From: Blastocladiella emersonii ATCC 22665
Taxonomy: Eukaryota > Fungi > Blastocladiomycota
Length of the DNA: 64,000 nt
Assembly (NCBI GenBank): GCA_025594325.1
Contig: JANHCV010000004.1
Span: forward strand, 310,001 to 374,000
Reading direction: 5' to 3'
Shown here: positions 1 through 26,300 of the stretch, one piece after another
How the letters are laid out: every line of letters starts with the position of its first letter
How positions within the stretch are numbered: position 1 is the stretch's first letter
Notes under the pieces: generated by a model
Told to the model about the DNA's origin: nothing
What the model saw: the letters and a program-made list of their open reading frames with translations, nothing else
Database searches by the model: none
Translations under genes and position numbers: made by a program

Positions 1-1
1 G

Positions 2-1571: not shown

Positions 1572-1644
1572 GGGCATATAGCGGAGTGGATACCGCGTCA
1601 GTTTCCGGCACTGAAGGACCCAGGTTCGAACCCTGGTATGCTCG
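1572..1644 (+). tRNA. tRNA-Arg(CCG)
   Basis: Acceptor GGGCATA/TATGCTC, anticodon arm TCAGT-TTCCGGC-ACTGA, T-loop GGTTCGAACC, 73 nt, followed by a T6 Pol III terminator. Confidence 0.93.
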
Positions 1645-1702
1645 CTTTTTTGCCCTGGAGCATTTTGTTTGTTCCGGTTCAACGCGTCGAAATCGAATTG
1701 AT

Positions 1703-3645: not shown

Positions 3646-4739
3646 TCCATTTGGGCCCCAAGTCCTGTTCAATGTTGAAGCTCAGCTATTGTTGAAGCTC
3701 CTCCGTTCCAATCAATCCTTGTGACTGGTCATATGCAAGCTAAAGTGTTGCTGCAACTCATTAAAAAATAAAATATGATCTGATGCAGGTTGAAGGCGAG
3801 CAGCAGAGGACGAAGCAAACGTTGGGGCGCAACAATGGCCAGTGTTAGGATTTGGGGTCCAGTCCTGACCTCAGCTGGCCTGTGTCGCAGCCCGCGTGAG
3901 ACAGCCGCGTTACCACACGTCCCTTGCACGGCCGCATGAGGCCCCGAGCCAGGACGCGTGTCGCGTCTCTCACCGCCCGCGGCGCGCACCAACGCGTCTG
4001 CCAGCGCGCCCCGCTGTACATAGCCCAGCGGGCCCCCCGCTAGCAAGGAGGGGACTTTGAAGAGTCATCGTTGAGCTGTGATCCCTGTCTCAACAGCCCA
4101 CAATCAGCGAAACCCAAACCAACGCCAGCATTGGTTGCAATTGGTGGTTCGCTTTTGGTTTGGTTGTCTTCCTCGTCCAGCAGATACTGTAGTCGGGCGG
4201 CGCGGATTTCAAGAACATTTTCAAGGGTCCGCGCAACTGCAACTGCAACCGCTCGCGTGGCGTGGCCAAATAGATCCGCTTGCATCAAGCCAAGGTCATA
4301 CTGGGCCAGCATCTAGCAGCTCGAATCTAGCAGCTCGACAATTTGACTAAAAAAAACGTTCCCATCATGGCGCAGAACTTGATGCGCGACGCGTGAAACA
4401 CAATGGCCGTTGCAAAACACGCGCGTCGCCTCAGGCTCCAACCTGACGGGATCATTTATTTCGGATGCGTTGGTCTTGTCTGCAAGCCCTTTGTAACAGG
4501 ACCACTACTATGGCGACAGTGTGTTGTCAAGAGCAGCGGGTTAGAGCAACAGCGGTTGATGCGTGCTCAACTTTGCAATACTCCTCCCATCAACCAAGGC
4601 CAACCACATCCCATCAACTCTCACTCAAACGCGTGTGTTTGCGGTTGTTCTTTCAGCCAGCATCAGGAAACCGGGAGGAGCTAGCTTGGGGCCTGCTAGT
4701 TTTGGCTTGCGCTGGATGACACGTCAGCTGAGGTCCCGT

Positions 4740-5100
4740 TTAGCCAACGTCAGGGACTTTTGCTGTCTGACTCAAGCTGGGTCTAGCTCACTCGTCATTA
4801 GCCAGCGATAGCTGACAGCTAGACAGGGATATCCAGCGCTAGCCAAGGTTTCTGAGCTGGCAATCAGCGAACGTTGGACAGCTGATAGCTGATGGCGAGC
4901 TAGCGACTCGCTAATGTTTTGCTAACAAGAGCTAGCTGAGCGGAAGGCTGGCTTCTCCGCCAGCGGCAGGCCTGATCGCTGGGCTGATCGCCAGCTAACC
5001 GCAGCTCGGCGCAGCCCAAGTCAGCTAGCGCTTGCCCCGACCGAGCTAAAACTGCTTGCATTTAGCTTGATCGTCGCTCAAACAAGCTCATTCAAGCAGT
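4740..5100. repeat. AGCT/GCTAGC-motif-rich degenerate repeat tract
   Basis: Dense AGCT, GCTAG and CTGA words; shares CTGACTCAAG, GGGTCTAGCT and CAGCTAGAC..AGGGATA with 6915-7050. Confidence 0.55.
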
Positions 5101-6914
5101 CGATGAAGTAAACGCGAGACAAAGATAGGAGAATGTAGCTCGAGCGGCCCATGTATTAGACATGGCCACTGCAATCAGACGCTCGCGTCAGCCAGCACGC
5201 AGGTGCCGCCGCGCCTCATTGCTTGCCGAGCGGGTCCATGAGGCCACGGATCTGCTTGGCCTTGTCCGCATTTGCGGTCAGCTTGGGGATCAGGGCCTTG
5301 CGCGCTTGACCGTCTGGTTCTCCTGCCTGTGCCTCTAGTTGGGCGAGTAGTGTCAGTACATGGCCGCAGTCAACAATTGGCAGGAGACGCGTACCTTGGG
5401 TACGAAATTGGTATTACGCGAGGAGCAGCGTCTGGACACATACGCGGTCAAGTGAGTTGCATTGCGCGTCAAGGCGCGCAAGTTGAGGGCGTACTGTGTT
5501 GCTGCCGTGTGCGCAGCTGTAGCAAAGGCGTTCCTGGTGGTCCGTCAAGAGGCGGTGGGACGCATGGCACGTAAGGACCGCAGTCTATCAAGATGGCGAA
5601 TGAGAGGAGGCAAGTCAGAGCCGCGTCAGCTGTGGAACCAAGTTGAGCAAACGTACCTGAGACGTGGGCGTGAGCCGCGTGGTGGCCACAAGCGGACCGC
5701 CTGAGCTAGTCCACCACCGCTCTCTACAGTTGTGCGCGGTGAGGCCAAGGCACGCGGTGCTGACGCGCAGCGGAATGCGTACCGTGATGCGTGCAGCAAG
5801 CTCAATGGCCAGGGTATCTGTGAGTCAAAAGGCTCAAGACCACTGACTTGGACGCGCGCACGCGGCTGGCTACACAAGCGCCGCCCAGTCATTAGTCATT
5901 AGTTCCACTGGTTCACGCGCGCGCGGTTGACGCCGCAGCGGGTGCGTTGCCTCGCGCTGCACTGTGCCCTGTTGCTGCAGGATAGCATGCAGGTGGAGCC
6001 AGCGCACGACAGCGCGCCGCGCGCGCGTGAGACACGCGCACCCACGGCAACAACACAATGGTGGCAAGATAGCACCCATGGCGCCATGACGGCGGGACGG
6101 CTCACGCATTGCAGTACGGTGGCAAGCGTTGCCAGCGGCAGCGTGCCAGGCTTGCGCCGCAACGTTGGGCGTGTCTGGAGCCAAGCTTGGCGACGGCAAG
6201 GATGGCGTAGCAAGGGGGCAGCGGTGACGGTGGCCGGCGAGAGTGCTGTGCTGCAAGGGTATCAAGTACTTCATTGCGGGGTGGACGCATTGAGAGAGCG
6301 GGAGCGGGAAGCGACCGCCGCGCGAAGACAAATCCCTCAGCTCCCAAACGCGCGTGCCAAAGGCTGCCAAGTCACCAGCCCAGCTACTTCATGTGCGGAT
6401 GACCCCCACGTGTTTTTGCAACGCGTCTCGCGGCCCGTCTCGCAGTCAGCCGAGCTGCAACTCCCTGACGCTAACCTTGCGCAGCTCAGTGAGTGGGCAG
6501 CACCATTGGCAGCAAAGCATGGGGAACAAGGAGAGCAGAATTACAGCAAAGTCAGCCTCGCGGTCTCAACAGCAGGCGCGCGAGCTTACTCACTCCTCGC
6601 CGCCTGGGTAGAGTGAGTGGTCGGCCTCAGCATTACTCTCATGCTGGGCCAACTTGTTGCAGTGGTTGAAGATGTCGCCACTTGCTGGCCCCTGCAACAC
6701 GTCATTGTCCGCAACGTCGCCCGCCATGTTGTCCTCAAGCCGGTGCTGAGAGGCTGGTCGTCGTTGCAAGATCCAAGAAAGGGGCACTTGATATGACATA
6801 ATTCCTTGTTGGCACAGAGCGGGTGAGGCAAGCACGAGCGGGCGCGTCATTGCGGTGTCATCTTCATCACCACGCTCTGTTACAGCATTGCCTTGCCAGT
6901 ATATTCCGCGACTG

Positions 6915-7050
6915 TCGCGCTAGAGGTTAGCCAAGGAAAGCCTGACTCAAGGTGAGGTCAGCTAGACCCAAGGGATAGCTAACTCAGCCCTTGAATCAGC
7001 CTGGGTCCACCTAGCCTCCACCCATTAGCTGAATCCTCCCGGATTCCTGA
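6915..7050. repeat. AGCT-rich tract related to 4740-5100
   Basis: TTAGCCAAGG, CTGACTCAAG and AGCTAGACCC (reverse complement of GGGTCTAGCT) are shared with the 4740-5100 tract. Confidence 0.5.
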
Positions 7051-7153
7051 TGCCTGGACGCAGCGCTCCACCTCTTCCTACTTGCTTGCGCTGTCCCAAG
7101 AAATCATTTGAGGTTTTACGCTATCAACTCTTTTGTGGGACCGGATGGACATC

Positions 7154-7225
7154 AGCGTCTTGGCGCAGAGGAAGCGCGCAGGGCTCATAACCCTGAGGTC
7201 GTAGGATCGAAACCTACAGACGCTA
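7154..7225 (+). tRNA. Initiator tRNA-Met(CAT)
   Basis: A1-U72 pair (AGCGTCT/AGACGCT), three G-C pairs in the anticodon stem (CAGGG-CTCATAA-CCCTG), initiator T-loop GGATCGAAA, long T-run terminator. Confidence 0.96.
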
Positions 7226-7274
7226 ATTTTTTTTTTTTCCAACGCATGGTAAGTGTGACGGAAGAAAAAAAAGG

Positions 7275-7346
7275 TGTCATCTCCCAGAATCGAACTGGGG
7301 TCGCCACGGCCACAACGTGGAGTACTAACCACTATACTAAGATGAC
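7275..7346 (-). tRNA. tRNA-His(GTG)
   Basis: Reverse complement GTCATCTTAGTATAGTGGTTAGTACTCCACG-TTGTGGC-CGTGGCGACCCCAGTTCGATTCTGGGAGATGACA; T-run terminator at 7264-7272. Confidence 0.95.
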
Positions 7347-9626
7347 TTGCTTGCTAGCCTATACTACAGGTTTTAATTCTGAAACTAGTTTGAAGAACTT
7401 CATAGTGGACAGCTCCCAGAACACGCTTGGCAGAATAGAGACCAAGGAGACTCATCTATTCGACGTTTGATCCATGCAACGGACACCTCAAGGCGGCATT
7501 CAAAAAGATATTTGCACACACAACACACGCATGAGGATTAATTACATTGGCCGTATCTTGGAACACAATCATCAACCTCTTCCCGCTTGACAATCAATCT
7601 GCTCAACCGTTCGTTTAGCAGTAGCACAACGACCCAGCGGTAGCGCGTTTGCATCCAGCAGCAGGGCCATGGCCCCGTGTGCATACTGATGCACATGCAC
7701 AGCGTGCGCAACCTGCCATGGCCCCTGAGCAGCACTTGCACGCAACGGGGGTGGCTGGGAACAGCACAGACTTGGAGGCCAATGCTGGCAATGGCATTGA
7801 GCAGCACACGCCAGCAGTACTGGTGGTGGCAGCGCGCTTCCCCTTGGCAGGTGGTGGCAGGGGGTGGCGGCAAGCGGGTGGTGGCACAGGTTGGCAAGAT
7901 ACTCTGGCGCTGCTCAATCTTGTTTATGGAGCGCAGCAGGACTGTGAAGCGGCACTCGTTCTTGCCAACGCGCGTGCACAGCTCCTTGTTCTTGATGGCA
8001 AGCGGAATGAGGGCCTTGGACATGGCAGCTGCCGCCTTGACAGTGGCAGGCAAGTCGCCACCCTCGAGGTCTGGAAGCAGGAATGCAAGTTGTGCCTGTT
8101 GCGCGCGTGAGTCTCAATTCGCAAGGCGCAGAGCTAGTTTTTGTCAATGCGTGTGCGTACCCTCAAAGATCAAGCAGAGGTGGTCAATCTGCTCTTGCAG
8201 CGCCTTGATTGGTGCAGACAAGTTGTCCAAGTGCAACATATTGGCAGTGTTCTCTATCCTGCTATCACACAACGTGGATGGGGGAGAAAGACCCAGCAAG
8301 GCCATCAGCACGCATATCTTGTACAAGCCAGCTGCTTGCTGCGCATGTCCAGCCTGTGGCAGCTGGAGGCAGCATGAAGCTTTAGCTTGGGCAAGCCAGC
8401 ACACGCGTAGGAACTGCAAGTGTGGATTGGTCGCGTGCATGCAACTGGACGCTGCTCTGCCATGGTACAGCGGGACGTTGCATGGTGTGTCATCAATACA
8501 TTACTTACCAGAGTGAGATGTGGGTGTGCAAGTCGAATCGCACCTGGCAGAAGCGACCAGCTCTAGTTCAAGTGCACACGCAACCGTGTGACCAGCCGCT
8601 GGCGCGTCGCGCCACTCACGTGCGCGCATGCAATCGATTGCATCATCCCCATCACGCTGCAGGCTGACTGCTGCACGCCAATCCGTCAACTCCACTGCTC
8701 ACCTTGGGTGGGTGTCTCCGCTCCTGTTCCTCTTGTATATTTTGCTAGTTGCTACTTTGCCTCAATAGACACCTAGTTCTTAGTTCCCTTCCTCCTGATC
8801 TATCTTGGCATCTCCCTCTTCAGCACCTTCTCCTCTCCCACTTGTTTGCGCACCGTAACCAACCTCCCCTGTGCCCAACGCTGTACGAGTCAACCATAAC
8901 TGCTCTTGGGGAGGCGCGGGGCGCACCCAGCCTTTATAGCGCGCAACAGGGGACGGCCGCTTTCACATGCCCTTCAAGCGAAAGCACCGCGCTGGCCGTT
9001 CCAGGCAAAATTGCTTGGTGCCACCACGTGCAGATGAGCGTCTCGCTTTGCCGCGTTGGGACGCATGCGCGATTTTCTTGCGCCGTGTTTCGCTGCTCAA
9101 CCTCGCTCAGCTGCAGGGTAGACAAATAAAATGAATGCGTGAGCGCAGGAACCTGCGGAAATCCTTGCGCACCATGTACAGAGAGTCCATGAAGGTTCTT
9201 GTGGACTTGCAGCAGTGAGCAGTCATACAGCCCTGATTTCTAATAGGTTCGCAGCCAACTTACGCAGAAGAGCCCCGCTGTTCACAAGTCCTGCATCAAA
9301 AGCGTAGAGCGCACCGCCTACTCCAGGAAATAGCCTGCAATGGAACTAGTCAAACAGTACCATCCATCTCACTGTCGCCGTGTACGGTTTTCTACTATCT
9401 CACCATGGTGCGAGACTGTGAGCTTGAGCACGGTCTAGTAGTGAGCCGTTGCGCAGCATCAGCAATCATCTAAACCAAAAGGCTGCTTTTCACTCTGTCC
9501 CGTTTGTACCGCACAGCGTGTTGACTATGGGACAAGCGTGGGCGGCCAAACTGGCCACAGAGGAGACGCGTAATGGCACTATTATTCATTTTCTATTTGT
9601 TTAGGCACTTGAACAGGCCCACACGC

Positions 9627-9950
9627 AGTTCAAGCGGACTCAACTGGGAGGAAGCTTGGCACAATGGACGCGCAATCTTGGCGGAGAAGAAGATTGAGGC
9701 GGTGAAGAGGTTCACGAGAGGACAACAGGCTGTATATGGTGGCTAATACTAGCAACTGGTCAAAGAAACAAGAGAGAGGGGATGCAGGGACGCGTTGCCC
9801 AATATGAGTGGGCCAACGCGTTGCTTGGTGAGGCGAGGCGGTCCGCGGCGATAACAAAGGAGATCGGCGCGGTGCGCGTGATTCGCGTGACGCGGGCGGG
9901 GTCGCACGCGTCCAGTGGCTGTGGCGCAACGCGATCACGTGCACTTCAAC
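9627..9950 (+). repeat. Dispersed repeat, copy 1 (direct copy at 25470-25895); possible solo LTR or TE terminus
   Basis: Long near-identical blocks, e.g. GGTGGCTAATACTAGCAACTGGTCAAAG and GATCGGCGCGGTGCGCGTGATTCGCGTGACGCGGGCGGGGTCGCACGCGTCCAGTGGCTGTGGCGCAACGCGATCACGTGCACTT, occur in both copies. Confidence 0.92.
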
Positions 9951-10565
9951 TCGCGCGTGGAATCCACGTATCTGCCCCACCACCACCCCCTTGAAGCAGG
10001 TTTATGGCGCAAGGGAGCAGTGCTGACACGCCGCTCGCGTCACGCAAGTCTATTGCCCCAAGCTCAGGGGTATCCTTGGTCCACCGCAACCTGATGAACA
10101 TGTTCTTGCTTGCAAACGAACAATCATGGATCACAGGTCCTCCCAGCGGTCCAGCGTGTGATTCGCCAACAACTTGACTTGCAGGTGACATCTTTCTGCT
10201 CCACATGGTGGTGACAGCAAGGAGGCTGGATAGCTGTGGCAACAGCAACCAAAGACAGGGTGAGACATGCCCTTGCACGCCAAACAAAGTCTCATACTGC
10301 CGCAGCTGGCTCAGAGGAGAAAACGCTTGGGCAGTAGGCAGCGGGGACGTTCACGGCCATGGTGCGCTTTGCAGTCATCACAAGCGGGGCAAGTTGAGAG
10401 GATCGCATCCATGGGGGAGTCGCTGTTGTCTTTGGTGATGCCAGTCGCTGTGTGGGGCTCGGTGAGGGTCTAGATCCGGCAGAGTGCGCGTCTAGGGTCG
10501 CCGGATGCCCCGAGGGGGACCGTCCGTGCAAAAACGAATAGGAAACATGCTCCGGGGAGCCAAAA

Positions 10566-10637
10566 TGAATCGTCCGGGGTTCGAACCCGACCCGCAGCCT
10601 TGGAAGGGCTGAATGCTGACCACTACACCAACGATCC
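10566..10637 (-). tRNA. tRNA-Gly(TCC)
   Basis: Reverse complement GGATCGTTGGTGTAGTGGTCAGCATTCAGCC-CTTCCAA-GGCTGCGGGTCGGGTTCGAACCCCGGACGATTCA folds as a canonical cloverleaf, followed by TTTT. Confidence 0.93.
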
Positions 10638-11899
10638 GATAATTTTTACCTGACAATTTTGACTATATACATGACCCCACAAGTCCAGGATCATGAAATG
10701 GCGCAGCCACCGACCTGTTTGGTCCGTCTTTCGACACTCCGGCCGCCGCGTGGCTCTGGCGCTACGATCGCGATGCCGCCTTTAACCACAGCTCCCCGCG
10801 CTAGGCGCGACCCTGTCTCTTCTTCCTCTTTGGTCCAACCAAGCGAAAATTGTCCTTGATACGTCGGTGCAACGAGAAGAGATACAGACGGGCTGGCATG
10901 GATCTGCTCGCCACTTGTCCACTTCAGCAAAGCAACCATGACTTGAAGTGCGACCCCATGACGTCAAACGCCACCTCGTGCAGGTATATAGAAGACAGCA
11001 GGCTACGTGCGAGCGTGGGCTCTACATGGGCTTGCACCGCCATCCTTCTCTCTTACATTCCACAATCAAATTGTTGGGATCAAGTTGCGTTCATCTCACT
11101 TTAACAAGCATATGCTCCCAACACTCCAAAGAGTTTTTATGCATATTCATAGTCATCAGATGACGCGTTACAAGGTTTTCCGCTGCAGTGCCAGATCGCC
11201 TGGCGCACAAGGTCCAAGTGCACGCTCACAGCCTTGCAATGGCACAGTGGTGCCAGCCAGTGGTGCCAGCTCCTTGGTCAAGGTACAACGCACGCCAAAC
11301 AAGCGATCAAAGACAACCCCTTCGAACCACACGAACGGTACGTACTCTCAGAGGCTGCTGCCGCTATACGATATTGCGGCTGCTGTGGTCAATGCGGCGC
11401 GGTTGGATGCCAAAAGCACAACTGCTACAACGTCCATGGCAACATGGCAATGGGCACTGGGTTGGCGACAGATATTCCCCACTCGCTTGCCGCGCCCAAG
11501 TGTCACTGGCGCAAAGGCAGCAGCAACTCACCTCTCGCTTACCCTTGTGGCTTGGATGTGCAGCACGGTTGTGCTGCGCAAGGTCGATCCAGGCGCGCTA
11601 ATTGATGCCCTCCCTCCTTTTCCCTTGTGAGCGCCGTTTTCTGGGCCGCAGATAATCCCTCATCTAAGTTAACAAGGACACCCAAACACCCCTACTGCCA
11701 CTGTCATAGCAACGCTGCCGCTACTACTCGCGCAGCTATGACCACTTGACACACGTTCTTGGCACCAAGCAACCGCTCTGATGGTAATTATTCAGTGTCT
11801 CCTTTTTTTTTTTGCGCGAACTGGTGGTAAAATGGGACCGGACCTGGTCCGACCCGCTAATCATTGGTTTGGTGAGATGAGGCGAGACGAGGCGAAGTG

Positions 11900-12967: not shown

Positions 12968-14509
12968 CTTGCACACTACGCGGCATGACGCGTGACCCGC
13001 CATGGCGTTGCATTGGACGGTGCGATGCCCAGTAGTAAGTCGAATGTATAGTCGTAGTTGATTGACTTGGTCGAGGTCAAGTGCACTCACAACGTGGCGG
13101 GTGAGTGGAACGGGCAAGGAGCCCCCGCCTGCCGTTTAAATGCGGGATGGAGTTTGAACCACAAGTTCGAACCCCAGAGCGCAGCGCCGCGTGCGGGGAG
13201 TCTCCGTTTTCCCCTTTTCGGTCCCGCCGAGATGTTTTGGCCCCCGCCAGAGTTGTTCCATTTTTCTTTCTCTATAGGGCCGGTCGTCTTTGTCTCGCGT
13301 CAATCGTGAACTGCGTTTGAGCGCGACCAACCAACGAGGTCGAGACAAAGGCAAAAAAGGGAGGAGATCCCTGAAACGGACGCGTCTCGGCGCGTCGCGA
13401 TTGGAGTGGCAGGGACGTCACGTCGATGTGAGGTGAGAGCGAGCGAATGGCGTCGCCCAGCTCGCGCGACTCGACTCGACTTGACCAAAACTCCAGCCCA
13501 TAGCACTGCGAATAATGGAAAGACGCTCCCATGCAACTGCATGCATTGAATTCATCTTGTTCAGGCCATGCAAGCGGTGCCGCTCTTGTCCCGTCATACA
13601 CGCGACACGGTGCACCCGGCGCGGGTCGAGTTGAATTGAGCTGAGCGGGCGACAACTCGTTGCTGTGGAGCCTCGCGCCAGGCTGTCGTCAGCTTTCCAC
13701 CCGTCGCACATTGTCGCGTTTCGATTTGGCCCTCAGGGGACGGCAGGCAGTAAGGCGGGCGAGCAAATGCTGCCGCGGGTCGATCCGCTACGGCTGGCTC
13801 TTGCTAGCAAGGTTTGCCTCCGTCCCTGTTCCATGGTCCGCCCCCTATCCCGACCTGCTTCAGGACGCAAGTTTCCTCCCTCACCCAATTTGAACAGACC
13901 GTGCCGGCAGGGCGCGTTTCCGTGAAAATCACGCGTTACTGATTGCTCACGTCCGCGAAACGGCTCTGTCTGGGCATCGCTGCGCGGAGCGGATGTAACA
14001 GTGACCGAGACTTTTGTTGTAACCGCGTAGCTTCGTGGTAAGGCTTGGTTCGTGGAGACCAGCGCGTACCACGTCCCGTACGCGATTGAAACGCGTTCAG
14101 GTTCTTGCTTGGAGATGGCCAAACCCGCTGCAAGCACCTCAGCTGGTCGTTCCTGTCGCAGACCCGCCTTCTAGCTTCTTTCATCATCCGTATCCTTCAT
14201 CATGCAGAGGATCAGCTCATCTTGAGAGCAGCAGCGCATGTGGAGCCGGTTCTCTATTTATTGCGGTCCTGACGGTTTGCCAAGCGCCTGGGACCCTGCC
14301 CTCCCCTCTGGCCTCGTGAAAACCATGGCGAAAACGAGTATACAATGCCACCGAATGACAGTGCGTGACCCTCACCCGATATTGCGACACCTATAAAAAC
14401 GTTTCACGAGGGCACCACCACGCGGGTCGTTTGTTGGCTCTGGATTTCCACAGGTCGTTCATATTTTCTTGTGCCAGGTCAGCGTATCGAACAAGTTTGA
14501 TGTCATCAC

Positions 14510-14750
14510 CAAACCGCGCCTGCCGAGGCCCCATGGATCCAGGGTGGATCCACCTCGAGCCTTCCAGCGCTGAATCGACCTCTTGATCAACGCTTGATCC
14601 AGATTTCGCAGACCGGATCCACCGTCATGAAAGGTGGATCCAGCCTTGACTGGCGCGAGCTGGAATGAGCTTCGCGGCGACCTGGATCGAGACGTTGATC
14701 CATTTCCTTGAAAGTGGACCCACACCTTGATCCACGCGCCCTGGATCAAC
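14510..14750. repeat. TGGATCCA/GATC-motif array (left)
   Basis: About 10 GGATCC/TGATCC-type words in ~220 bp, starting AAACCGCGCC..TGGATCCAGGGTGGATCCAC. Confidence 0.85.
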
Positions 14751-15019
14751 TTGTTGTAAATGTAGTTTTAGGCGTCGATCTACGTCTATATCCAACTCTT
14801 GCTCAGGCAGAACCAGGAGCTGATCGACGGTGAACATGGTGGTGAAGAAACTCGTGCGAAAATGTATCGAAATGGTCGCAACGACCCAGAAAAGCATTTG
14901 AGGGAGCCGAACGCAACTAGACGTGTTCGTGCTGCTGCAGGATGAGCTCGAGCCCGTCGCCAAACGTTGTGTTTGCGCCGCCAGGATCACGGCGGTCCAC
15001 AAGTCGAGCGAGTTGGCGA

Positions 15020-15450
15020 TCTGCGGCATCATGAGCAGCGTGAGGCTCGCAGCGTCGTCGTACACGTTGATGAGGTGCTCGGTGTACCCGCCCTGGTGCG
15101 CCGAAGATGGCCGGTTCCCGTTCGGCGCGACGTGAAGGAAGGCCGAGATGGCCGACAGCGGCACGATGTGGAACTCGCACGTGGCGGGCTGCGTAGGGCG
15201 GAGAGCAAACGTCTGCGCGGCGTATAGGCCCGGCGGAACGACGCGCGGCACCGACTGGTAGAGGTGGAACCGCTCGACGAGCATGATCTCAAGTTCAACG
15301 TTGTCCAACTCCAGGTCGGAGGGCCAGGTGCGCGGATTCCGCTTAGCGAAGCACATCCAAGGGCAGCGGCAAACTTTAAGTACTACCTGAGCCTCACGAA
15401 AATTCACAAACAAAGGGACAGTCTTCACGGCCGCCGCGACGACACTCTTC
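15020..15450 (-). pseudogene. Plavaka/CACTA(EnSpm)-like transposase C-terminal remnant
   Basis: Translation FREAQVVLKVC...EIMLVERF...PPGLY...HIVPLSAISAFLHVAP...HLINVYDD resembles the Plavaka C-terminal pattern (RVAQVRxIF, LAYVEWF, MYxV, IIPLxxIxRxxHLxP, xVNxYxD) as recalled. No catalytic core is visible upstream. Confidence 0.5.
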
Positions 15451-18400
15451 GCGGGGGGAGCGCCGCGGGATGGCTCGCCATGCGACCAGGTCCGTCTCGG
15501 TCCACTTCCAAAGCTCACGGCACGGCCACACGCTTGCAGCGAGTGATTCATGGATCATTCATAGAGTGCGACGTCGCGGTGCTGTCACCGGGAGGAGGGA
15601 GCGCCGCCGCTGCGAAGGGAGGAGCGAAACGCGTCGAAACGCGTCGGAATGAGGTCACGCGTGGGCGTGCCGCTCGTTTATGGACTCCGATCAGAGACAA
15701 AAGCCAAGTCGCGTTTTTCGGACACGTTCCGGACGCGTTCGAAAAGGGTTTTGTCGCGCGCGTGACCGAACGCGTCTGCGGTGCGTTCGAAGTTTTTCCG
15801 CTCCTCCCTCAGCAGGCAGGGCGAGCGACCACCGCGCGGCAACGCTCGCTCCCTCCTGGACTCGCTCGCTTCGTCGCTCATGGAACTCGTACAGCGTAAC
15901 TGATATGAATCTTCATGGAGGATCGTTGCCACGCTGAGCTTATGTCTACTGCGGACTGCGTGGCGCTCGGATCCCGCCTCCCCAAGCGTGAGGGCACCAA
16001 GCAGCGGCCGACTCTCCGCAACGGCCTCGCGCCTGGTTCTTGAGAAGCTATGCCTCCATGAGTGGTTGTGAACACGTCGGAGGGGTGCACCGTGCTGCCC
16101 GGGTCGCTCGCCAGCGCGGATCGGACGACGCGCCACTTCTTGAGCCATGTTGCGAAGACCGCTGCGGTCGTGAACGAGCGCCGCGCCCGAGCTGACCTTC
16201 GCAGCACGAGTGACCGTGTCTCGCTCGTCTGGGCTCGCTCGAACAGACAGCGTGCGCGCGACGGCGACGGGTGGCGCCCGCTTCGTGGGAAGCGTGGAGG
16301 ACTGCGCGTGACGGCAGCCACTCGACTGCTCGCGGCGCCGGCGGGCAACGCGGAGCGGAGGGCAGCAGCGACTACTTGTTGGCGTCTTCACAAGCGTCAG
16401 CAACGTCGCTTGTAAGCTAGAGCGTCGGGAACCTTACTTTGACGCGCCTGAGCCGGTACGCGGTGCAAACATCGTACGCCGACCGCGAGCGATGTACACG
16501 ACCGCGGAGGCGGCTCCCGCGCCGACGGTGACGCGCTAAAACGTTGCGGGCGAGTCTAAGCAGGTCCCCGCCGCTGCGAGCTTGGCGCGCTCGTGTTGCT
16601 ACACTTTAACGCGGCCGTACAGCAGCTGGCTTCCCGTCACCGCGGCGAGAACGGCGATGCTTTGAACTTGTGCACGCCTCGTCGCGCAAAACTTAAACTC
16701 GAGATCGACTCAACCCGAGGAACTCAGTGAGCTCGTTCCGTTGGGCTCGCGGCGTGAGCGAGTCGCACGGTGAGCTGACGGCGCCCGACCCCAATCTCGG
16801 GGTATGCCCGCGTTTCTCGGAGCCTTACCGGCTTCAGCTGCTCCTCGTCACGCGAAGCGCTGCACCTGTATCACGACGGGACCGGCGCGGAACTTGGCGG
16901 GTCCTTTGACCGCGTATCGTCAAGGACGACCACGTACGCGTGAACCGAGGCGGGGATGATCTCTTGGGTGCGATTGCTGCAGTGACGCGCGCCGTCGGGG
17001 CCAAGTATCTCACTGACCTAGCCGATCCGTACTCTGTCGAGCAGTCGTTCATCCAGCCTCAAGTCAAGTTCAGCAACGTTGTTGCAGATGCACCACGCAC
17101 CCACTCGCCGCCGACCCGGCCGCTGCGAACCGCTCGCTGCTGTTCTACATCCCCTTGCCCACGAACCTGGCCGCCGCGAGCTGTTAGCTGTTCCGCGTGC
17201 TTTCGCTCACGGGCACCAATCGATCTGAGCTGTCGGACCGGGCGTTTGCGATTTGGCGCCACGTGGTTGGATTGTACTCGCTCGCCGGCGTCATCGCGGA
17301 GCACCACGTCAACAAGGACCGCTTAATGTTTATAGTCATTAAGCATGCTCGCTCCTAAAGTCATTAAGCATGCTCGCTCCGTCCTCAGGTTTCGCGGTCG
17401 AAACCCTCTAGGACAGCCACAAGAACCCCGTAGCGACCCGCCTCCGCTGAGCTGACTACGTCATGTCGCACAATCTATCGTACCTCAATTCGCTTACACG
17501 GTAAGCATCGGGTCATGCGCATCTTTCGAGAGCACGCACGATGTCTACCTTTCTCGGATGAGAGCCTCGCTCACACGTCCGCTCATCGTCCCCTATTCTG
17601 TCGGATCCGCGCAAGCGCGCTCAGATTTTCTCCATGGCCATGGCCATCGCCTTTGCCAGCTGCCATCTATGCGACTTGTAAGCGCTTTCTTCCTTCCTAC
17701 TTGCGTCCGTCCTGCCGTAGCTTGCGAAACTGCGAGATTCTTCCCTTCTTGTTGCCGCCGAAGACTTGAATAGAGTACCCATTCGCACCATTTGTACCGC
17801 GCTCAAACCCACAACGCGGCGATTAGTCAACGTGACCAAGGCGAGGCGCGTTGCGCCACATCGCCGTGTGAGACACGGTCCCAGGGACTTGTTGTGCTAC
17901 GGGACGTGCGCCGCGCTCGCGGCCAACGAGTCGGCGCTTCGCTTCATTGCAGCGTATTCCCCAACGACCTGCTCACGCTACCCGCCGGCGCCGACGTCGC
18001 CGCCACGATGTACTCGCGATTGCATGTCTCGTTTATGACTCGGCGACGCAAGCACTCTCGTGAACCCCTTCGCCAGCCCTGCGCATCCCTTCATCACTAT
18101 CCGGGCTACGGAAACGCACAACGTGATGATCGAGGTCATGGTCGCGCTGAAGGTGAACAGCGCAACGGCGGTCACGGCCAACATGGTTGTGCACGACGAG
18201 CCCAACTCGGTCCTCCCCATCATATTCATAAATGGCTGCACTGACGAGTTTGTCGTCGCTCTCGCTATGCTGCTGCCGCCCTTCACAAACGGCGTGAACA
18301 GCGCCGTTTGTGAAGGGCGGCAGCGGCGAGACCGAGAATCGGCGGCGCTCGTCTTGCAAAGGGCCACGGCTCAGTTTGAAGAGCGCTTTGTCGACTACAC

Positions 18401-19029
18401 CGCGCTTACTCGCAAGCGAGGCAATGAGGCGCGAGCGGCGAGCCCGGCGGCACCAACACTATGACGATGCAGTCCACTTGACCAGGCCTCAACGGCGTTC
18501 GGCCGCCGCCAACGCTCCTCGGCGAGCTGTATTACAAGTGCCTTCTTGCGCGCGTCGAGCTAGAGCGGACGAACGTGCAGGAGATTGAGACTCTGCGACT
18601 AGCACCCGCTGCTGGTGCAGGTCCACGGCTCCCTTGCTGGCTCCCGCATTCGCCATGAAGCCATTCTCCCTCTCCAATTGTCACGCTACGACAAGACAGT
18701 CGGGCAACCCTTGTACTTCGAAGCTCGTACTGAGGCGAGCGAAGAGTTGCGAGGTCGAAGCGTTGCTACGTTTTCTATCAGGGCAAGCACTTCCAATCCA
18801 ACGGCCGGCCGGCGTCGCGCGGGCGCGCGTTGGTCGCAGTGGTCCTGCTGGTGCTGCTGCTCGGCCAGGTCCTGGTCCTTGTGCTGTGTGCGTCGTCGCG
18901 CTGCCCGTGAGCACGCCCGCGCCCAGCTTGACGCGCCAGCTTGCAGGCACCCGCGGTAGTGGCGCGAGTGGCTCGTCGCGCTGCTGCTCCTGTTGTTGCG
19001 GCTCGGCCGCCGCGGCAACGGCGCTCGTG

Positions 19030-20480
19030 AGTGACGACTGCTCCACGAGGTGCGAGACGTGCGGCAGCCACAGTCCGACGCGGACCTCGTGGTCCGCCAG
19101 AGACACGACCTGCACGACTATGGTACGCAGCAGCAGCGGCGACTGTAGTCAGGCGACGACCACGTACCGCGCGCGGGGCTCAGTGGCGCGGGAGCTTGCG
19201 TCCGCCTCGGTTCGCGCCACGCACGCGCGGCACGCGGCGCGGGATCTTGGCCTCGATGGCGGCCTGGGCCGCGGCGCCGGCGGCGCGTTGCTGCTGCTGG
19301 TTTGGCGTCGCGGGCGCGATCTCGGGCACCTAGGCGTGCACTGGCTTCACGTACTAGTTGACGCCGTCGTTAAGCACCACGCACGACTTGAGGCGGTGCA
19401 GCGACTCGGGTCCTACAAGCTGCCCGGCGAACCGCGTCGCGCTCGCGACAATCGCTTGTTCGAGCGTCGGTCCGTCCGCGATCGCGCCGCCAACGAGGTC
19501 CTGCGCGGGTCGCCGCTGCTGCTCTGTCGCGGGCGATGAGACGCCGAGGAGCGACTTGACGCGGGTGACGACCAACGCGCGGATCCCGCCGACCAGCTCA
19601 GCGACGCGGCCAGGCGCGTGGTTGGGGCACACGGCGTAATGCGCCTGCGAGTCGACCGCGCCGCACGTACACTTGTCGCCGTGCACGAACCGGGTCGGGT
19701 ACAGCGCGTACTGGCCCTGGCGCGACGGCCGGATGCCCGTGGCCGCCTTGAGCGCGACTCCCGTCATCCCGTTCTGCTCTCGCAACGTCTCGCGGGCGAG
19801 CGGCTTGGTCCCGCCGTGGATCGCAAGCGACGTCGCGAGCCAGTCCACGCCGTCGGCGACCGCGTCGGCGCCCTGCAGCGTGCCCGTGACACCCGTACCG
19901 TCCTGCTGCTGCTGCGCGAGCACCATGGCCGCCCGCGTCGCGCACTCGGCCTTGAAGCGGCGCGCGATAAAGTTGCGCAGGTCCGAGCACACGGGCACGC
20001 CCTTGAAGTGCAGCGCGTGCGGTTCGGCGACCATCGCACGGATACCCGGGTACACGCGCGCCGTGTCCTTGCCGCGGTCGCGCTCCGCCGCGCCCATGGA
20101 CGTGAGCACGTCAGTCGTCATTTTGCCAAACTCGCCGTTGTGGCCCTTGACCCACTTGAGCGTCAGCGGGAGCCCGCGGCCCTCGAGCGCGACGCGCATC
20201 GCCGCCCACATGTCCGAGTACTGCGCGCGGATGTGCTTGCGCAGCTGCGTCTCGGCGGCTGCTGCAGATGCGTGATGGCGGCCGCAATGAGCGCCTGTGA
20301 GTTGATGAGCACGTGCAGCGCGGTGCACGGCACGGCGTGGTTCATGGCAAGCAGCAGCGCATACAGCTCTCTGCGCGTCGACGGGTGTGGCCAGGGCGGC
20401 CACGAGCTGACGCGTACCACGCTGTCGCGACGGCGCAGCCCGTGGACTCGTGCAGCACTAGAGCAGAGCAGCGACGAACC
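19030..20480 (-). mobile_element. 5'-truncated non-LTR retrotransposon (LINE) ORF2 remnant: RNase H plus C-terminal CCHC finger
   Basis: STRRELYALLLAM..LHVLINSQALI, then (frameshift) LTLKWVKGHNGEFG = RNase H motifs. Downstream KCTCGAVDSQAHYAVCP = LINE C-terminal zinc finger, and VGLWLPHVSHLVEQ resembles the IW-x-x-R motif. Catalytic residues are degenerate and no RT domain is present. Confidence 0.8.
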
Positions 20481-20649
20481 GGCGTGTGCAGCACTGGAAC
20501 GGGTCGGCAACGAATCGGAGCGCGTCGCGTGCGCGCGGGGGCGACGCGCGGGCGCGCTTCGACTCGGAACACAGGCGGTGCATTCAAAGCTACACACGGT
20601 GCTTTGTCGTACACGGAAACAAGCCGGGAGCGTTCCCGTTTGACGATCA

Positions 20650-22050
20650 GTTGCTGCGCGCGACGACGCCGTGATGCGGAAAGCCACCGCTCCTCCTACG
20701 GCGGGCGGGGCACCCTTGCGCCGCCAGAACAAAGCAGCGAGATACCACGAGCATCCTCAAAGTGTTGTGAACATCGAAGCCCACTGCGGTGGCGTACACG
20801 GCCGAACGACGCGAGCGACGGGCGGGGACGTCGTCGACCCGCTTCCGCGGACGAGCGAGCGGTCGCGCTTCTCCACCGGCTAGCGCAGACCGACGAACGA
20901 GCGTATAGACGAAGGCTAGCGAGCGAGGAACGCCACCGTCTACCGATCGGGCACGGCGCGAGGCGACGTGGTGTTGCTGAACGCCACCGCTTCTTTGGCG
21001 ACATGCGGCGCACGGCACACCCTTACGCCACCAGCACGAAGCGGCGGGATACCGGGAGCGTCTCCAACACGTCGCGCCCGTTGAATCTCGCCGCCGTAGC
21101 GCACGCAGCCGATTGATGCGAGCGACGGGTGGAGACGTCACCGCTTCCCTTGCGGCGCGCGGCGCACGGCGCGCTCTTGTGCCACCAGCACGGAGCAGCG
21201 AGATACCGGCAGCGTCCCCGACAGGTTGCGCTCGTCGAGCTCTGCTGCCGTAGCACACACGGCCAATCAACGCGAACACCAGTCGGGGACGTCGCCGGCC
21301 TGCTCCTGCGGACGAGAGAGCGGTCGCACGTCCCAAGGGATCGGCGCAGACCGACGAACGAACGCACGAAAGCAAGCCGGCGAGCGGGGAACGCTACCAC
21401 CCGCCGAACGGTCGCGGCGCGAGGCGACGCCATGGTGCGGTGCGCCACCGCTCCGCTCGCTGCGCACGGTACGCGTTCTTGCGCCGCGAGCACGAAGCAG
21501 CGACGTACCGGGAGGGTCTCCAACATGTTGCGCTCCTCGAACACCGCTGCTGTCGCTCGCGCTGGCTGGCCGCGTGCGCGACGGGCAGGGACGTCGCCGA
21601 CCCGCTCCCGCGGACGAGCGAGCGGTCGCACGTCCCCAGCGGCTAGCGCGGACCGATGGGCGAACGTACGGACGCAGGCTAGCGAGCGGGAAGCGCCACC
21701 GGCCGCCGAACGGTCGCGGCGCGAGACGACGCCGTGGTGCGGAACGCCACCGCTTCCTTCGCGTCGCGCGACGTACGGCGCGCTCTTGTGCCACCAGCAC
21801 GGAGCAGCGAGATACCGGGAGCGTCTCCAACATGTTGCGCTCGTCGAACCCCGCCGCCGTATCGCACGCGGCTGGTCGACGCGAGCGACGGGCGGAGATG
21901 TCGCCAACCCGCTGCCACGGGCGAGCGAGCGGTCGCACGTCCCAAAGAACCAGCGCAGACCGACGAACGAGCGTACGGGCGCAGACTAGCGAGCTCGGGA
22001 CGCCACCGCCCGCCGATCGGACTCGGCGCGCGGAGCCACCGTGTCGCGGA
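20650..22050. repeat. Tandem array of ~305 bp diverged GC-rich units (~4.5 copies)
   Basis: The anchor GCAGCGAGATACC(G) or a variant lies at ~20735, ~21040, ~21195, ~21495 and ~21805. GAGCGAGCGGTCGCACGTCCC and AGACCGACGAACGA recur with similar periodicity. Confidence 0.9.
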
Positions 22051-22893
22051 CCGTTTCCGTCGCGCTGCGCAACCCGCCGCGTGCACAGGCGCATGCAGTA
22101 CGACGCAAGGAACTCGGGAACCGGCTCGAGCAAGCATGGCGCGCGAGCTCGTCGCCATGACGGGTACGGCCGGGCGCGCGCGAGATCGGACCGCCGTCAA
22201 GTCGTCGTCGCGCACGGGCGGTTGTGCTACTTCCGCAGCCTCAAGGACCAACATAACCGATACCTCGGACGTGTGCACACCGAGGAGAGCGCATGCCGTC
22301 GGCGCTAGCGCGTGGAGTCGCTCCCGGACCGCGAACCGGCCAACTCTCGCTAGCGTGCACGCTGGCGTCTCATCTGACAGGCTCACGATCAAGCACTAGC
22401 AAAAGTCGAGCAAGAAACTTCATGTATCATTCATTCGCAGCTGCATGGGAGGGGAGTAGAGAGCGTTACATGGCTGTCTCGCAGCGGCGGAGAGCGAGCG
22501 TGCGCTGCGAGACAGCTGGCCGCTTCAGGCAGGGGCGCGGAAAAACAAACGCGGCAGAAGGGCGAACGCGCCGATTGGCCAGAGGGGTTTTGTCCACGGT
22601 CACGTCGCGCGAATCGCGTTCCGAAAAGCGCGTTTGCTCATGTGGTGTGGCGCCGCTGAAAGCTGATTGGTCAGAAACGTGTTCAGGACGCGACCGGACG
22701 CGAAGACGCACGCGACTTGGCTTTTGTCCCCGATGCGCCGCCATACTCGTTTCGGCCGCGTTCGCTTTTGCGGACTCTGCGCCGCGACGGCTCGCGCTCC
22801 CTCGCCCCACCACCAGCGGCCATGATATCGACCCACTCGACTCTCGAGACCTAGCGCAACCGCCTGCACCACCACCCCTCAACCTCCATGTAC

Positions 22894-24937
22894 CTCATGT
22901 CGACGCGCATCCGCCCGACGCCACCACGGGCCCGCGCCGCTCGGTGACTTCCACGGTACGCGTCTCTCGCCTTCTCCGCACATTCTCCTCCCCCGCGACG
23001 TGCATCCGCAGTCACGCCTCGAGTCCGCCGACATGCCCTGCACGCGTCGACGGGACTCACGCCCGCCGCTTTCGATGTTCACGCCGCGTTCCCACGCCTT
23101 TCGCGCCGACTGTCCGTTCGCTCACTGACGCACTCACCTTACGACCGCTTTGCCCTGTTTCTTAGCCTTCGACGAGCACATCATGCTGCAACGGCGCTCG
23201 TTGGGTCCGCGGCAACGTGTTTGCGTCGATCCTGACCAAGTTCGCGATCCTGACCAAGTTCACGACATGGTACGCGGTGTGCGACTCGGCCTACTTCTCC
23301 CATTGACCGAGACTAACACGTTCGCGGCCGCCATAAATAGGGCGCCGAGTACGCCGAGTCGCGGCGACAAGGGCCGCCCCTCAACCATCGCGTCGACTCG
23401 CGCACGACGCGCTCAAGCCCGCGCGGTACGGTTCCTCTCCTTCGCGTTCTCGAGGCGATTCGCGCTGCGTGCGGGCGACGCAGACCTCGAGCTACCGAGC
23501 GGATTCGCTCGTGTCGACAGCATGGGTCCTGACGACGCGACCCGCGCGTTCGCGTCGATTGTACTCTTCGCCCGACCTTTTGCTCACCTGTCTCCGCCAC
23601 GTCGCCCATAGCCTCGGTCAACGACGACAAACCTCAACTACGATCAAGAAGCCGCGGTCGCGGCGAGGTCTCGCTGCTCGGGTCGTCCCTGGCCTCAAAC
23701 ACGCGCCTGGCTGCACGTGCGAGTCCGAGTTCGAGGTACGCGACTCGGTCGGCGTACTCGCGGACCGAGACTGACACGGTCGACTCGAGTAGGTCATCCA
23801 GTACATCAAGCTGCAGCGGTAAGGGTCATTTCGTCGTCTGCCCTTGTGGCGCGCGCGAGGTCATGCGGCGTCGATCTCATACACCCGCATCAAGGACTGG
23901 AACCTCAAGCACAAGCTCGGGATCAAGGATATCGAGGCGTTTGGGAAGGAGGTACGCGGACGCGGTGTGGGTCGCCGCGGTGGCAGGTGCTGATGCCGCT
24001 TCCGTGTAGCTCACCAAGGCCCTGCAGACGATCCGCAAGCCGTTCAAGGAGAAGACGGAGTGGTTCGACCTCGTGCAGGCGGCCGCCGACAACTCGTGCA
24101 TCATCACCAACAAGGTCGGCGAAAAGAAGTCGCTCACCAAGCAGTGACTGGTCGGCGAGGCGCCCGAGGAGCTCCACCGCGCCACGCTGGCCATGGTCGA
24201 CGAGTACGACGACGCCGACCTCGACATGGATTTCGCCGACGCCGACGTCGATGCGGCGATGTCGGTCCGCGCGTGCCGTGGTGCTCACCCGCTGTACGTG
24301 TCCTTCCTCGACCGACTCCTCTTTGGGCAGGCGAACGACATGGCCAACGCTCGAGGCTCGAACCAGTCGTCGCACGGTACGGCTTTGCTCACCAAGTCGC
24401 ACTCGATCCCGTCGCTCACGTTCCGCACTGTAGCCATGCGCATGGCCGGCTACACGATTGTCAACGACCTCAAGCTGCTCGACATCAACAAGCCCTTCCC
24501 GATCGACGGGTCAAGTCCGGTGTGGCGCATCATGGCCGCGGTCGCTGTCCTTGTGCGTTTTGCTCTTGCAATCTGCCGGGTTCCTCCTTTCGCCTTCGCC
24601 CTCTCTGACTTCACCGCGATGCACGCTCGCCGCTTTCTAGTGTGCATGGCGCATCACTGGGAGCGCGTACCAACAAGGTATCATCGTCGGCCTGACCAAG
24701 GAGGACGTCAAGGTGACGCTCGCCGACTACTACGACGCCTTCCTCGTCTCGAGCACGGGTTCGGTTTCCGTCGCCAAGCGCATCTACCTGGCCTCGCAGC
24801 TCCGCGCGCTGTTCAAGCGTGGGATCCTCAACGTCAGCCTCGCCGAGATCGCCCAGCAGAACACGGGCGTCGAGACGACCAAGACCCAGGCGGCTATGAC
24901 CGTCGACATTGCGAACGACATCTGCCCCGACGAGTAG
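22894..24937 (+). pseudogene. Multi-exon orphan gene of unknown function with an in-frame TGA
   Basis: Host-like codon bias and GTACGC/GTAAGG..YAG introns. Exons read SYTRIKDWNLKHKLGIKDIEAFGKE / LTKALQTIRKPFKEKTEWFDLVQAAADN..KQ*LVGE / AMRMAGYTIVNDLKLLDINKPFPIDG / IIVGLTKEDVKVTLADYYDAFL..DICPDE*. Premature TGA at 24145-24147. The 5' exons are uncertain. Confidence 0.6.
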
Positions 24938-25089
24938 CTGCGCCATACCACATCTCGGGTGGCGGGGTGTGCAGCGGGCGGTGCGAGCGCATCAAGGGCT
25001 GGTTCCCTTCCTTCATCTCGACCTCTCTGCGCACTCCATGGTCATCGTTGTGGGGCGTACGCGTGTGTATATATTGAACCGTTCGACCC

Positions 25090-25465
25090 TTGATTCGCTC
25101 GTGGATCTTGAGTGCGCTTGCGTGGATTGCGACGTGGATCAGCGCCTCGACTCGGGCTATAACCAAATGGATCCACGCCAAGGTCGAGTTGATCGTCAAA
25201 CTGATCGACGCAAGGATCCATGTTTATCGTGGCCTAGTTCCGTGCCTGGATTGCGATATTACTTTCCTGGATCCAGCTCGCGATCCACCTTGACCAAAAG
25301 CTGGATCCATCTGAGAGGTCCGCACGGTTTGCGGGTGGATCCAGCTCGCCCAAGCTTGATCCACGCTTGATCCAGAAAAGTAATATCGGGATCCACATTC
25401 CCCCGAGGTCCATCCAGTCCACGGCTGGATCCAGGGTGGATCCACTTCAAATGGCTGGGGCACGG
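25090..25465. repeat. TGGATCCA/GATC-motif array (right)
   Basis: About 17 GGATCC/GATC-type words, ending TGGATCCAGGGTGGATCCAC..GGCACGGTTTG; shares CGCTTGATCCAGA with the left array. Confidence 0.85.
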
Positions 25466-25469
25466 TTTG

Positions 25470-25895
25470 AGTTGAAGCGTACTCGGCTGGGAGGAAGCTC
25501 GGCACGATGGACGTGCGATCTTGGTGGAGATGAAGATCAAGGCCGTGAAGAGGTTCACAAGAGGGGACGGTGAAGAGGTTCACAAGAGGGGACGGTGAAG
25601 AGGTTCACAAGAGGAGACGGTGAGGAGGTTCACGAGAGGAGACGGTGAGGAGGTTCACGAGAGGACAACAGGCTGTATGTGGTGGCTAATACTAGCAACT
25701 GGTCAAAGGAACAAGAGAGAGAGGGGATGCGAAGGCGCGTCGTCCGATGTGAGCGGGCCGACGCGTCGCTCGGTAAGGTGAGGCGGTCCGCGGCGAATAC
25801 AAAGGGGATCGGCGCGGTGCGCGTGATTCGCGTGACGCGGGCGGGGTCGCACGCGTCCAGTGGCTGTGGCGCAACGCGATCACGTGCACTTGAAC
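25470..25895 (+). repeat. Dispersed repeat, copy 2 (of 9627-9950) with an internal 5 x 25-bp tandem expansion
   Basis: GTGA(A/G)GAGGTTCAC(A/G)AGAGG(G/A)GACG starts at 25545, 25570, 25595, 25620 and 25645; copy 1 has only one unit. Confidence 0.92.
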
Positions 25896-26300
25896 TGTTT
25901 GGTGATGGTAACCTTTGTTCGGAGCGTCTGAGAACGGGTTGGTTAGAAATGCGAGTACCGCGCATCGAGCGACGCGAGTAGGTCGATGCACCCGCGCTCA
26001 GTAAACTTGGGCATGTTTGAGCCGCCATGGCCAGGTCCGCGTTTCGACCTGCTTGACATTTGCATGTCGTAGCGGCAATCGGTTGATAACACGAGGACGT
26101 GATATTCCCACACGCACTCGTAGTGCGCGAAGGATGCGAAAAGTGCGGCGAACCTAGCTGAGCAGCTCGGAACAGACTGTGGCGCAACGCGTCGCTATTG
26201 CCTTGGTGACACGATGATTCTTCTCACTCATCATGCGGAGGTCGATCCAAGCGATTCAAAACTTGTTCGCGTCGTTTATTCATCTCTCTCTCAGTTCATC

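Follow-up and report, generated by a model that had tools for sequence, protein, structure and literature searches.

In a 64,000-nucleotide stretch of the genome of the blastoclad fungus Blastocladiella emersonii ATCC 22665 (contig 16:310001-374000 of a 32.65-Mb assembly; hereafter the window, to which positions refer unless a contig is named), two arrays of short palindromes lie 10.6 kb apart and bracket a block of about 11 kb. The question raised by this locus is whether the block constitutes a single mobile unit, as put forward in an initial reading of the sequence (hereafter the original prediction), which saw in it one cargo-carrying DNA transposon with a passenger gene. The analysis points to a different anatomy, in which positions 14504-25907 most probably form a nest of three mobile elements. 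The host, element A, is interpreted as a decayed, non-autonomous member of the Plavaka lineage with PlavakaB-like features, interrupted in its centre by a second element, B, and near its right tip by a solo long terminal repeat (LTR).

Anatomy and copies of element A and its inserts

Against an expectation of 0.45, the window contains the palindrome TGGATCCA 10 times, a count that none of 100 shuffled sequences equalled, and nine of the ten sites fall within 14534-14642 and 25168-25444. The relaxed motif TKGATCMA presents the same concentration, with eight instances in 14521-14770, eight in 25090-25452 and just four across the remaining 63 kb. These counts bear out the two arrays of the original prediction, and the arrangement described for their outer edges was also seen at both of them: TGGATCCA-NNN-TGGATCCA, then 13-14 nt and then GGCRCGGTTT in the outward reading (AAACCGYGCC inward).

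Comparison with other copies in the genome defined the boundaries of family A. The family has a 17-bp terminal inverted repeat, CATCACCAAACCGYGCC; intact copies open with CATCACCAAACCGCGCC and close with GGCACGGTTTGGTGATG, and all of them present CATCACC at the start and GGTGATG at the finish. In the window this repeat confirms the presence of inverted ends but moves the start of the element from the 14510 originally proposed to 14504. The 17-bp end pattern has 94 occurrences in the genome at up to two mismatches, against 11 for the reversed control, and the left 281 bp and right 391 bp of the element match 20 and about 22 other genome sites, respectively. Ends were found paired, in the same orientation and 2.5-3.9 kb apart, on contigs 1, 5, 9, 15, 17, 18 and 21, and one pair on contig 19 lies 9.3 kb apart. 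Identical 2-bp flanks border seven of 14 end pairs (GT, TG, GC, TG, GT and GA, together with GT in the window; binomial P = 8.6e-6), and one further pair shows a 3-bp match, TCG. The genome search with both ends that had been suggested as a check hence recovered paired copies, common termini and 2-bp duplications, and the proposed DNA transposon bearing terminal inverted repeats and subterminal arrays was confirmed by ends paired at no fewer than 14 loci.

Full sister copies align to 14504-15638/15679 and then resume directly at 22746-25469, and the unit of family A, which has at least 20 copies in the genome, is therefore about 3.8 kb and not 11 kb. The 10.6-kb spacing of the arrays holds at this locus but is not native to the family, since in other copies the two arrays lie ~3.3-3.9 kb apart. 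Four other copies, 95-98% identical among themselves, share 89-91% identity with that of the window. Shorter derivatives of 2.5-2.8 kb lack the segment equivalent to 23630-25264, and two mini-copies reduce the element further. One of 286 bp (L065, contig 19:934322-934607) consists of ends and palindromes and nothing else, and one of 80 bp (L060, contig 17:492694-492773) comprises the left end, TGGATCCA-GGG-TGGATCCA and the right end, flanked by TG on both sides. Over 14 copies of family A, conservation in the subterminal arrays reaches 0.964 in motif columns and 0.907 in spacers. Together with the 80-bp mini-copy and its fresh TG duplication, the conservation of the motif columns suggests that the palindromes are likely protein-binding sites, and the arrays would be putative targets for the transposase or for a helper protein.

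The interior that separates the two halves of A in the window has ends of its own. Its imperfect 36-nt terminal inverted repeat is the longest inverted pair of the region, and the duplication that flanks it can equally be read as 6 bp or as 7 bp (CTCGTTT). Three sister copies of A (L057, L052 and L053) present a single CTCGTTT in an uninterrupted site (...GCCG-CTCGTTT-CAGCCGCG...), and a second copy of B, 91-95% identical and with the same boundaries, was identified at contig 11:425119-431962, not inside any A element, which brings the copies of B in this genome to two. The empty site, the target duplication and the independent copy therefore establish B as an insertion and not as cargo, and the proposal of one ~11-kb mobile unit was not sustained, given that a 7.07-kb interior has its own ends, duplication, empty site and second copy. 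Positions 16600-16828 of B are missing from the contig-11 copy, which may reflect an indel or a small extra insertion.

IS3EU DNA transposons generate 6-bp duplications and have terminal inverted repeats longer than 30 bp with termini TAYGG..CCRTA (Kojima 2025, PMC12730594). Element B looks IS3EU-like, with its 6-bp duplication, its inverted repeat of more than 30 bp and its TATGG..CCATA termini, which fit that consensus. It differs in having no recognised transposase, its interior being mostly non-coding with one open reading frame (ORF) and a tandem array, and it is probably non-autonomous. No Pfam domain was detected in the ORFs of B in a scan that covered most ORFs of at least 90 aa with profiles other than an IS3EU-specific one. 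The sole clearly coding stretch in B by codon-position GC is 19160-20240. The ORF annotated in B as hypothetical protein H9P43_003843 has relatives at five other genome loci (68-76% identity), and a protein search with it returned its own annotated model alone. The original prediction placed in this interior a fragment of a long interspersed nuclear element (LINE) with an RNase H tail. This candidate found no support: inspection by eye alone picks out a Cys/His knuckle and an end motif resembling that of RNase H in the ORF, the ORF has no Pfam match even at E = 10, and of the 79 RVT_1 hits genome-wide not one falls within B or next to any of the ORF's five relatives. The tandem array noted in the same interior was found to be real, with a repeat unit of 302 bp instead of 305 bp.

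The third element, a solo LTR, parts the last 6 bp of A (GTGATG) from the rest, such that the right end of A seemingly stops at 25469. The sequence of this LTR is that of both direct repeats of a ~7.7-kb insertion in a contig-9 copy of A (L029/L045), an insertion that is a retrotransposon flanked by its LTR pair. A second copy of the LTR is present in the window at 9626-9952. A 25-bp unit occurs in 4.8 tandem copies in the LTR at 25470-25896 and about once in the LTR at 9626-9952.

The features of the nest are listed below, with strands where these apply.

Table. Features of the nested elements at positions 14502-25909 of the window
Feature	Position	Strand	Basis or remark
Left copy of the 2-bp target site duplication of A (GT)	14502-14503		Right copy at 25908-25909
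Left terminal inverted repeat of A, CATCACCAAACCGCGCC	14504-14520	+	Match of all genome copies starts at this base
Left subterminal array, 8-bp palindrome-like TKGATCMA motifs (TGGATCCA type)	14534-14760		Motif counts
Relic of C-terminal exon of Plavaka-type transposase, toward left end, catalytic part absent	15003-15401	-	GC3 (GC content at third codon positions) and homology
Left copy of the 6-bp target duplication of B (CTCGTT)	15673-15678		Right copy at 22746-22751
Nested element B, 7,067 bp, TATGG..CCATA	15679-22745		Imperfect 36-nt inverted repeats at 15679-15714 and 22710-22745
ORF inside B, hypothetical protein H9P43_003843 (P0014)	19357-20457	-	GC3 0.9
302-bp tandem array inside B, 2.9 copies, 76% matches	21135-22030		Tandem repeat analysis
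Second gene of family A, toward right end, upstream exons uncertain	23330-24940	+	GC3 and annotated paralogues
Core exons of second gene	24010-24552, 24641-24937	+	Intron 24553-24640
Right subterminal array, TKGATCMA motifs	25090-25445		Motif counts and conservation
Inner 11 bp of right terminal inverted repeat of A	25459-25469	-	Comparison with intact copies
Solo LTR in right terminal repeat of A, 427 bp	25470-25896		5-bp duplication GTTTG at 25465-25469 and 25897-25901
Outer 6 bp (GTGATG) of right terminal inverted repeat, true right end of A	25902-25907	-	Intact copies end GGCACGGTTTGGTGATG

The base composition of the block agrees with the original description of a CpG-rich segment set against the DNA at ~5-11.7 kb. 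The observed-to-expected CpG ratio is 1.24-1.38 across the block, similar to that of the genes on its right, versus 0.85-0.87 with an excess of TpG/CpA at 1-11.7 kb. CpG has been lost from this old repeat compartment (1-11700) and not from the copies of A and B, which lie in the contrasting region 14504-64000, and no clear C-to-T excess was seen in the substitution spectrum among A copies.

The census of family A also yielded observations on the copies themselves. Among A copies, the segment equivalent to 23546-25134 of the window, which includes the non-coding 24934-25134, is 93-98% identical, and the middle (15302-23500) is 81-87% identical, a mosaic for which uneven age, gene conversion or recombination between subfamilies would be candidate causes. 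Certain copies occur as mirror-image pairs with flanks that are exact reverse complements (contig 3:65768/123117 and contig 18:357804/373563), and mirrored matches to internal protein sequence were found at contig 16:192083-195415/213319-216651 and contig 17:379513-382482/414100-417069. The arrangement of the mirror-image pairs, ~15-57 kb apart, points to large inverted segmental duplications rather than to independent insertions.

The two genes of family A

Codon-position GC revealed a coding signal on the minus strand at ~14930-15340 (GC3 0.85-0.93), within a 308-codon ORF that, among A copies, is open in the window copy only. A phmmer search with this exon against 1.84 billion representative proteins returned three hits, one of them its own annotated paralogue. 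Its match to P0002 (KAI9173193.1, H9P43_007324), encoded at contig 21:1149751-1155138 of the same genome, has E = 1.1e-7 and spans residues 1201-1293 of 1294. With BLASTP the identity is 34% over 96 aa and the alignment reaches the final residue of P0002, the part of the exon at 15003-15290(-) corresponding to its last 95 residues. P0002 in turn matches the Pfam Plavaka domain (PF18759) over residues 619-769, with 33.1 bits against a curated cut-off of 26.3. A six-frame scan with PF18759 identified three loci in this genome and none in 14 control genomes, and two of these Plavaka loci, at contig 21:1152097(-) and at contig 17:1490044(+), are each followed 2-3 kb downstream by a same-strand homologue of the exon. 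The homology to the tail of P0002 and the presence of exon homologues downstream of two Plavaka domains therefore identify the exon as the tail of a Plavaka-type transposase. This upholds the Plavaka/CACTA-like transposase C-terminus of the original prediction, by a transitive link that runs via a paralogue encoded elsewhere in this genome.

The gene model of P0002 is a fusion of an MFS transporter (residues 1-507) and a Plavaka transposase (residues 504-1294), and the transposase part maps colinearly onto contig 21:1149751-1152894.

The exon is present in all subfamilies of A, including one that lacks the core of the second gene described below. The other parts of P0002 were sought by tblastn in the window copy and in every fetched A copy, and none were found. 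Likewise, the genome scan for PF18759 detected no Plavaka domain between any pair of A ends, so that the domain is present in no A copy and the ~95 terminal residues alone survive. With the tail of P0002 as the only part retained between A ends, family A is therefore internally deleted and non-autonomous.

A separate family of at least 12 copies carries 137-codon open frames that are 40-46% identical to the tail of P0002 (residues 1173-1286), and some of its copies also match residues 923-1035 just upstream. The corresponding sites are contig 20:1222062, 20:722086, 20:261573, 20:1310373, 6:822963, 4:350518, 4:145550, 4:1293659, 7:651712, 2:839539, 5:524683 and 17:1215766. From these matches, this may represent a second, larger Plavaka-derived family.

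The second gene of family A points to the right end. GC3 is 0.85-0.97 over 23950-24550 and 24650-24940, in two frames, and the change of frame is common to all copies. The genome annotation models it as an intron (GTGCGT...CTAG) between the peptides AVAVL and CAWRITG. This gene was searched exon by exon, and whole-protein steps were carried out with its annotated paralogues. The search with the main exon, against 5.8 billion proteins in the length range, returned nine hypothetical B. emersonii paralogues (P0004-P0012) and nothing else, in agreement with the spliced orphan gene that had been predicted to adjoin the right end. Genome searches with a paralogue and with a profile confined the core of this orphan gene, bar one weak match, to about 12 long A copies; a sister subfamily with the same ends carries the upstream part only (e.g. 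contig 3:181139-184418 and contig 16:192083-195415). The window copy is a pseudogene, with TAG at 24145-24147 in place of a Trp that is invariant among the paralogues and TGA at 24007-24009. Between orphan copies, the ratio of nonsynonymous to synonymous substitution rates (dN/dS) is 0.7-1.35, about neutral and with no sign of selection after insertion, as expected of copies decaying once inserted.

No Pfam match was obtained for most ORFs of at least 90 aa in 14.6-25 kb, nor for the longest frames of the sister copies. The orphan profile returned noise only from PDB and Pfam, the main exon gave no usable hit in the ESM Atlas, and AlphaFold2 on the nine orphan paralogues gave a predicted local distance difference test score (pLDDT) of 29. 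The single match outside the family, with E = 0.02 in both genome searches, is a weak one at contig 17:1487144-1487278(-). It lies 2.8 kb upstream of the Plavaka gene at contig 17:1490044 and divergent from it, an arrangement as in A, which hints that the orphan could be an original partner gene of Plavaka and not captured cargo. As judged from sequence, the orphan is a gene real in origin, species-restricted as far as seen, part of the family unit and dead in the window. The passenger gene of the original prediction belongs to the ~3.8-kb family unit rather than to this one locus, and survives in the window copy as a pseudogene.

Competing readings and proposed history of the locus

The evidence on copies and boundaries bears directly on the notion that the whole 11 kb is a single transposon, moving as a unit with ~7 kb of captured cargo that includes the passenger gene. 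It is true that the block as a whole is enclosed by the arrays and the inverted ends, and a composite could in principle still move from its outer ends. However, no other locus presents the 11-kb form, the remaining ones being 3.9 kb or less or containing different insertions. The interior combines inverted ends and a 6-7-bp duplication with an empty site and a contig-11 copy outside A, and the right end of the window copy is split by the solo LTR. We therefore consider this notion barely credible. Somewhat less implausible, yet still decidedly unlikely, is that A is autonomous and that the orphan, alone or with the left protein, constitutes a new transposase recognising TGGATCCA, in which case the likeness to the Plavaka tail would correspond to a shared DNA-binding or dimerisation module. 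Both genes are kept, in divergent orientation, in every ~3.8-kb copy, open frames persist in some of them, the GC3 of the orphan is strongly of the coding type and an autonomous partner with the ends of A was not found in the genome. On the other hand, comparison of the orphan with Pfam, PDB and Atlas showed no similarity to a recombinase or nuclease, its dN/dS between copies is near neutral, and the sister subfamily and the 2.5-2.8-kb derivatives share the ends yet lack the orphan core. Furthermore, the left gene aligns to the extreme end of a Plavaka transposase of 790 residues and terminates at the same point, as an internal-deletion derivative would.

Duplications of 2 bp are not unique to Plavaka (PMC12730594), and the exon covers the non-catalytic tail alone, which leaves room for A to belong to another superfamily with such duplications (ISL2EU/PHIS or Mirage), with the exon as a captured fragment. 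This we regard as highly improbable. The termini CATCA..TGATG are those published for PlavakaB (PMC12730594), and the exon is located at the edge of the element and directed outward, as a 3' end would be after internal deletion. It also accompanies all subfamilies, even the one lacking the orphan core, and no transposase, whether of PIF/Harbinger type or another, emerged from six-frame and Pfam scans of the copies.

Several results count against the interpretation of A as a Plavaka derivative and of B as an IS3EU-like insert. The exon itself produced no hit to Pfam Plavaka or Transposase_21 in the profile run originally suggested for it, and phmmer against the 1.84 billion representatives detected no relatives of it outside this genome. 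A word-based protein search with the transposase part of P0002 returned P0002 alone, and the closest transposase tail is just 34% identical to the exon. The Plavaka assignment thus draws on one domain hit of moderate score, the termini and the duplication. The genome scan found no autonomous copy with the ends of A, and six of the 14 end pairs have no matching 2- or 3-bp flank. For the window copy, the flanks do not recur among the fetched loci, which yielded no paralogous empty site for the A insertion itself. In the case of B, the IS3EU label draws on termini and duplication alone, with no recognisable transposase.

With these points weighed, a nest of three elements hosted by a Plavaka-derived A remains the interpretation that we favour by a wide measure, and it suggests the following history. 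A would have inserted at the locus with duplication of GT. B would subsequently have inserted in the centre of A with duplication of CTCGTT, and an LTR retrotransposon, also after A, 6 bp from its right tip, later collapsing to a solo LTR; the insertions of B and of the LTR are not ordered relative to each other. Since no A copy keeps the catalytic domain, we infer that the family was mobilised in trans, by a Plavaka transposase with its gene at another locus; the three Plavaka loci of this genome would be candidates. The window copy of A is dead and immobile as a unit, with a right end parted by the LTR and a nonsense codon in its second gene.

Significance and comparison with known systems

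In blastoclad fungi, a previous survey based on one genome had recorded very low numbers of DNA transposons (PMC5751038), and Plavaka elements whose ends are defined were until now known from Agaricomycotina and red algae (PMC12730594; bioRxiv 10.1101/2025.02.11.637652). The family of at least 20 copies described here in B. emersonii extends the Plavaka lineage and its characteristic ends to an early-diverging fungus, as a first Plavaka-type family to be well delimited in a blastoclad and one with a partner gene still to be explained. Its 80-bp mini-copy offers a very small natural substrate for probing recognition by Plavaka transposases. The results also bear on genome annotation: at least nine 'hypothetical protein' models and adjacent short models correspond to transposon genes, H9P43_007324 joins a host MFS transporter to a transposase, and the nest at this locus should not be taken for gene capture.

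Among known systems, that of En/Spm (CACTA) has subterminal arrays of short repeats that bind the helper protein TnpA, and internal-deletion derivatives of the dSpm type that are moved in trans. Family A resembles En/Spm in that its terminal inverted repeats are short and give way, further inward, to subterminal arrays of short repeats that extend over several hundred bp. It differs from strict EnSpm/CACTA elements in its ends, CATCAC and not CACTA, and in its duplication, 2 bp and not 3 bp; Transposase_21 (PF02992) gave no hit in A at E <= 0.1. Its repeat unit is an 8-bp palindrome, and it carries two divergent genes versus the one spliced transcript of En/Spm.

Plavaka elements form a lineage of the EnSpm/CACTA-Mirage-Chapaev-Transib clade. 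With families reconstructed from Agaricomycotina, they have been split into two lineages, one of which, PlavakaB, is characterised by the termini CATCA..TGATG and by duplications of 2 or 3 bp (Kojima 2025, PMC12730594). Element A presents these termini together with a 2-bp, occasionally 3-bp, duplication, a transposase remnant with homology to the tail of a protein carrying PF18759 and an extra gene other than the transposase. It departs from PlavakaB in that the PF18759 catalytic domain is present in no copy, which is expected of a non-autonomous derivative. Extra genes have been described on Plavaka elements, TET/JBP in fungi and PAG in red algae, where giant elements of 17-19 kb carry PAG3, of unknown fold, beside inverted-repeat arrays (bioRxiv 10.1101/2025.02.11.637652). 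A differs from known Plavaka elements in its blastoclad host, in its extra gene, which is neither a TET/JBP dioxygenase nor a protein with any known domain, and in the dense TGGATCCA palindrome arrays at both ends.

By analogy with TnpA or with PAG3, the orphan protein could be a sequence-specific helper that binds the TGGATCCA palindromes, a role that we put forward as doubtful speculation. It might also shield the element from silencing, given that A copies are not depleted in CpG and the neighbouring older repeats are. The red-algal elements offer a parallel in organisation: like them, A carries an accessory gene of no known fold, which adjoins arrayed short repeats of palindromic or inverted type. 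In this comparison, made on described organisation, A differs in its size (3.8 kb versus 17-19 kb) and in having arrays at both of its ends.

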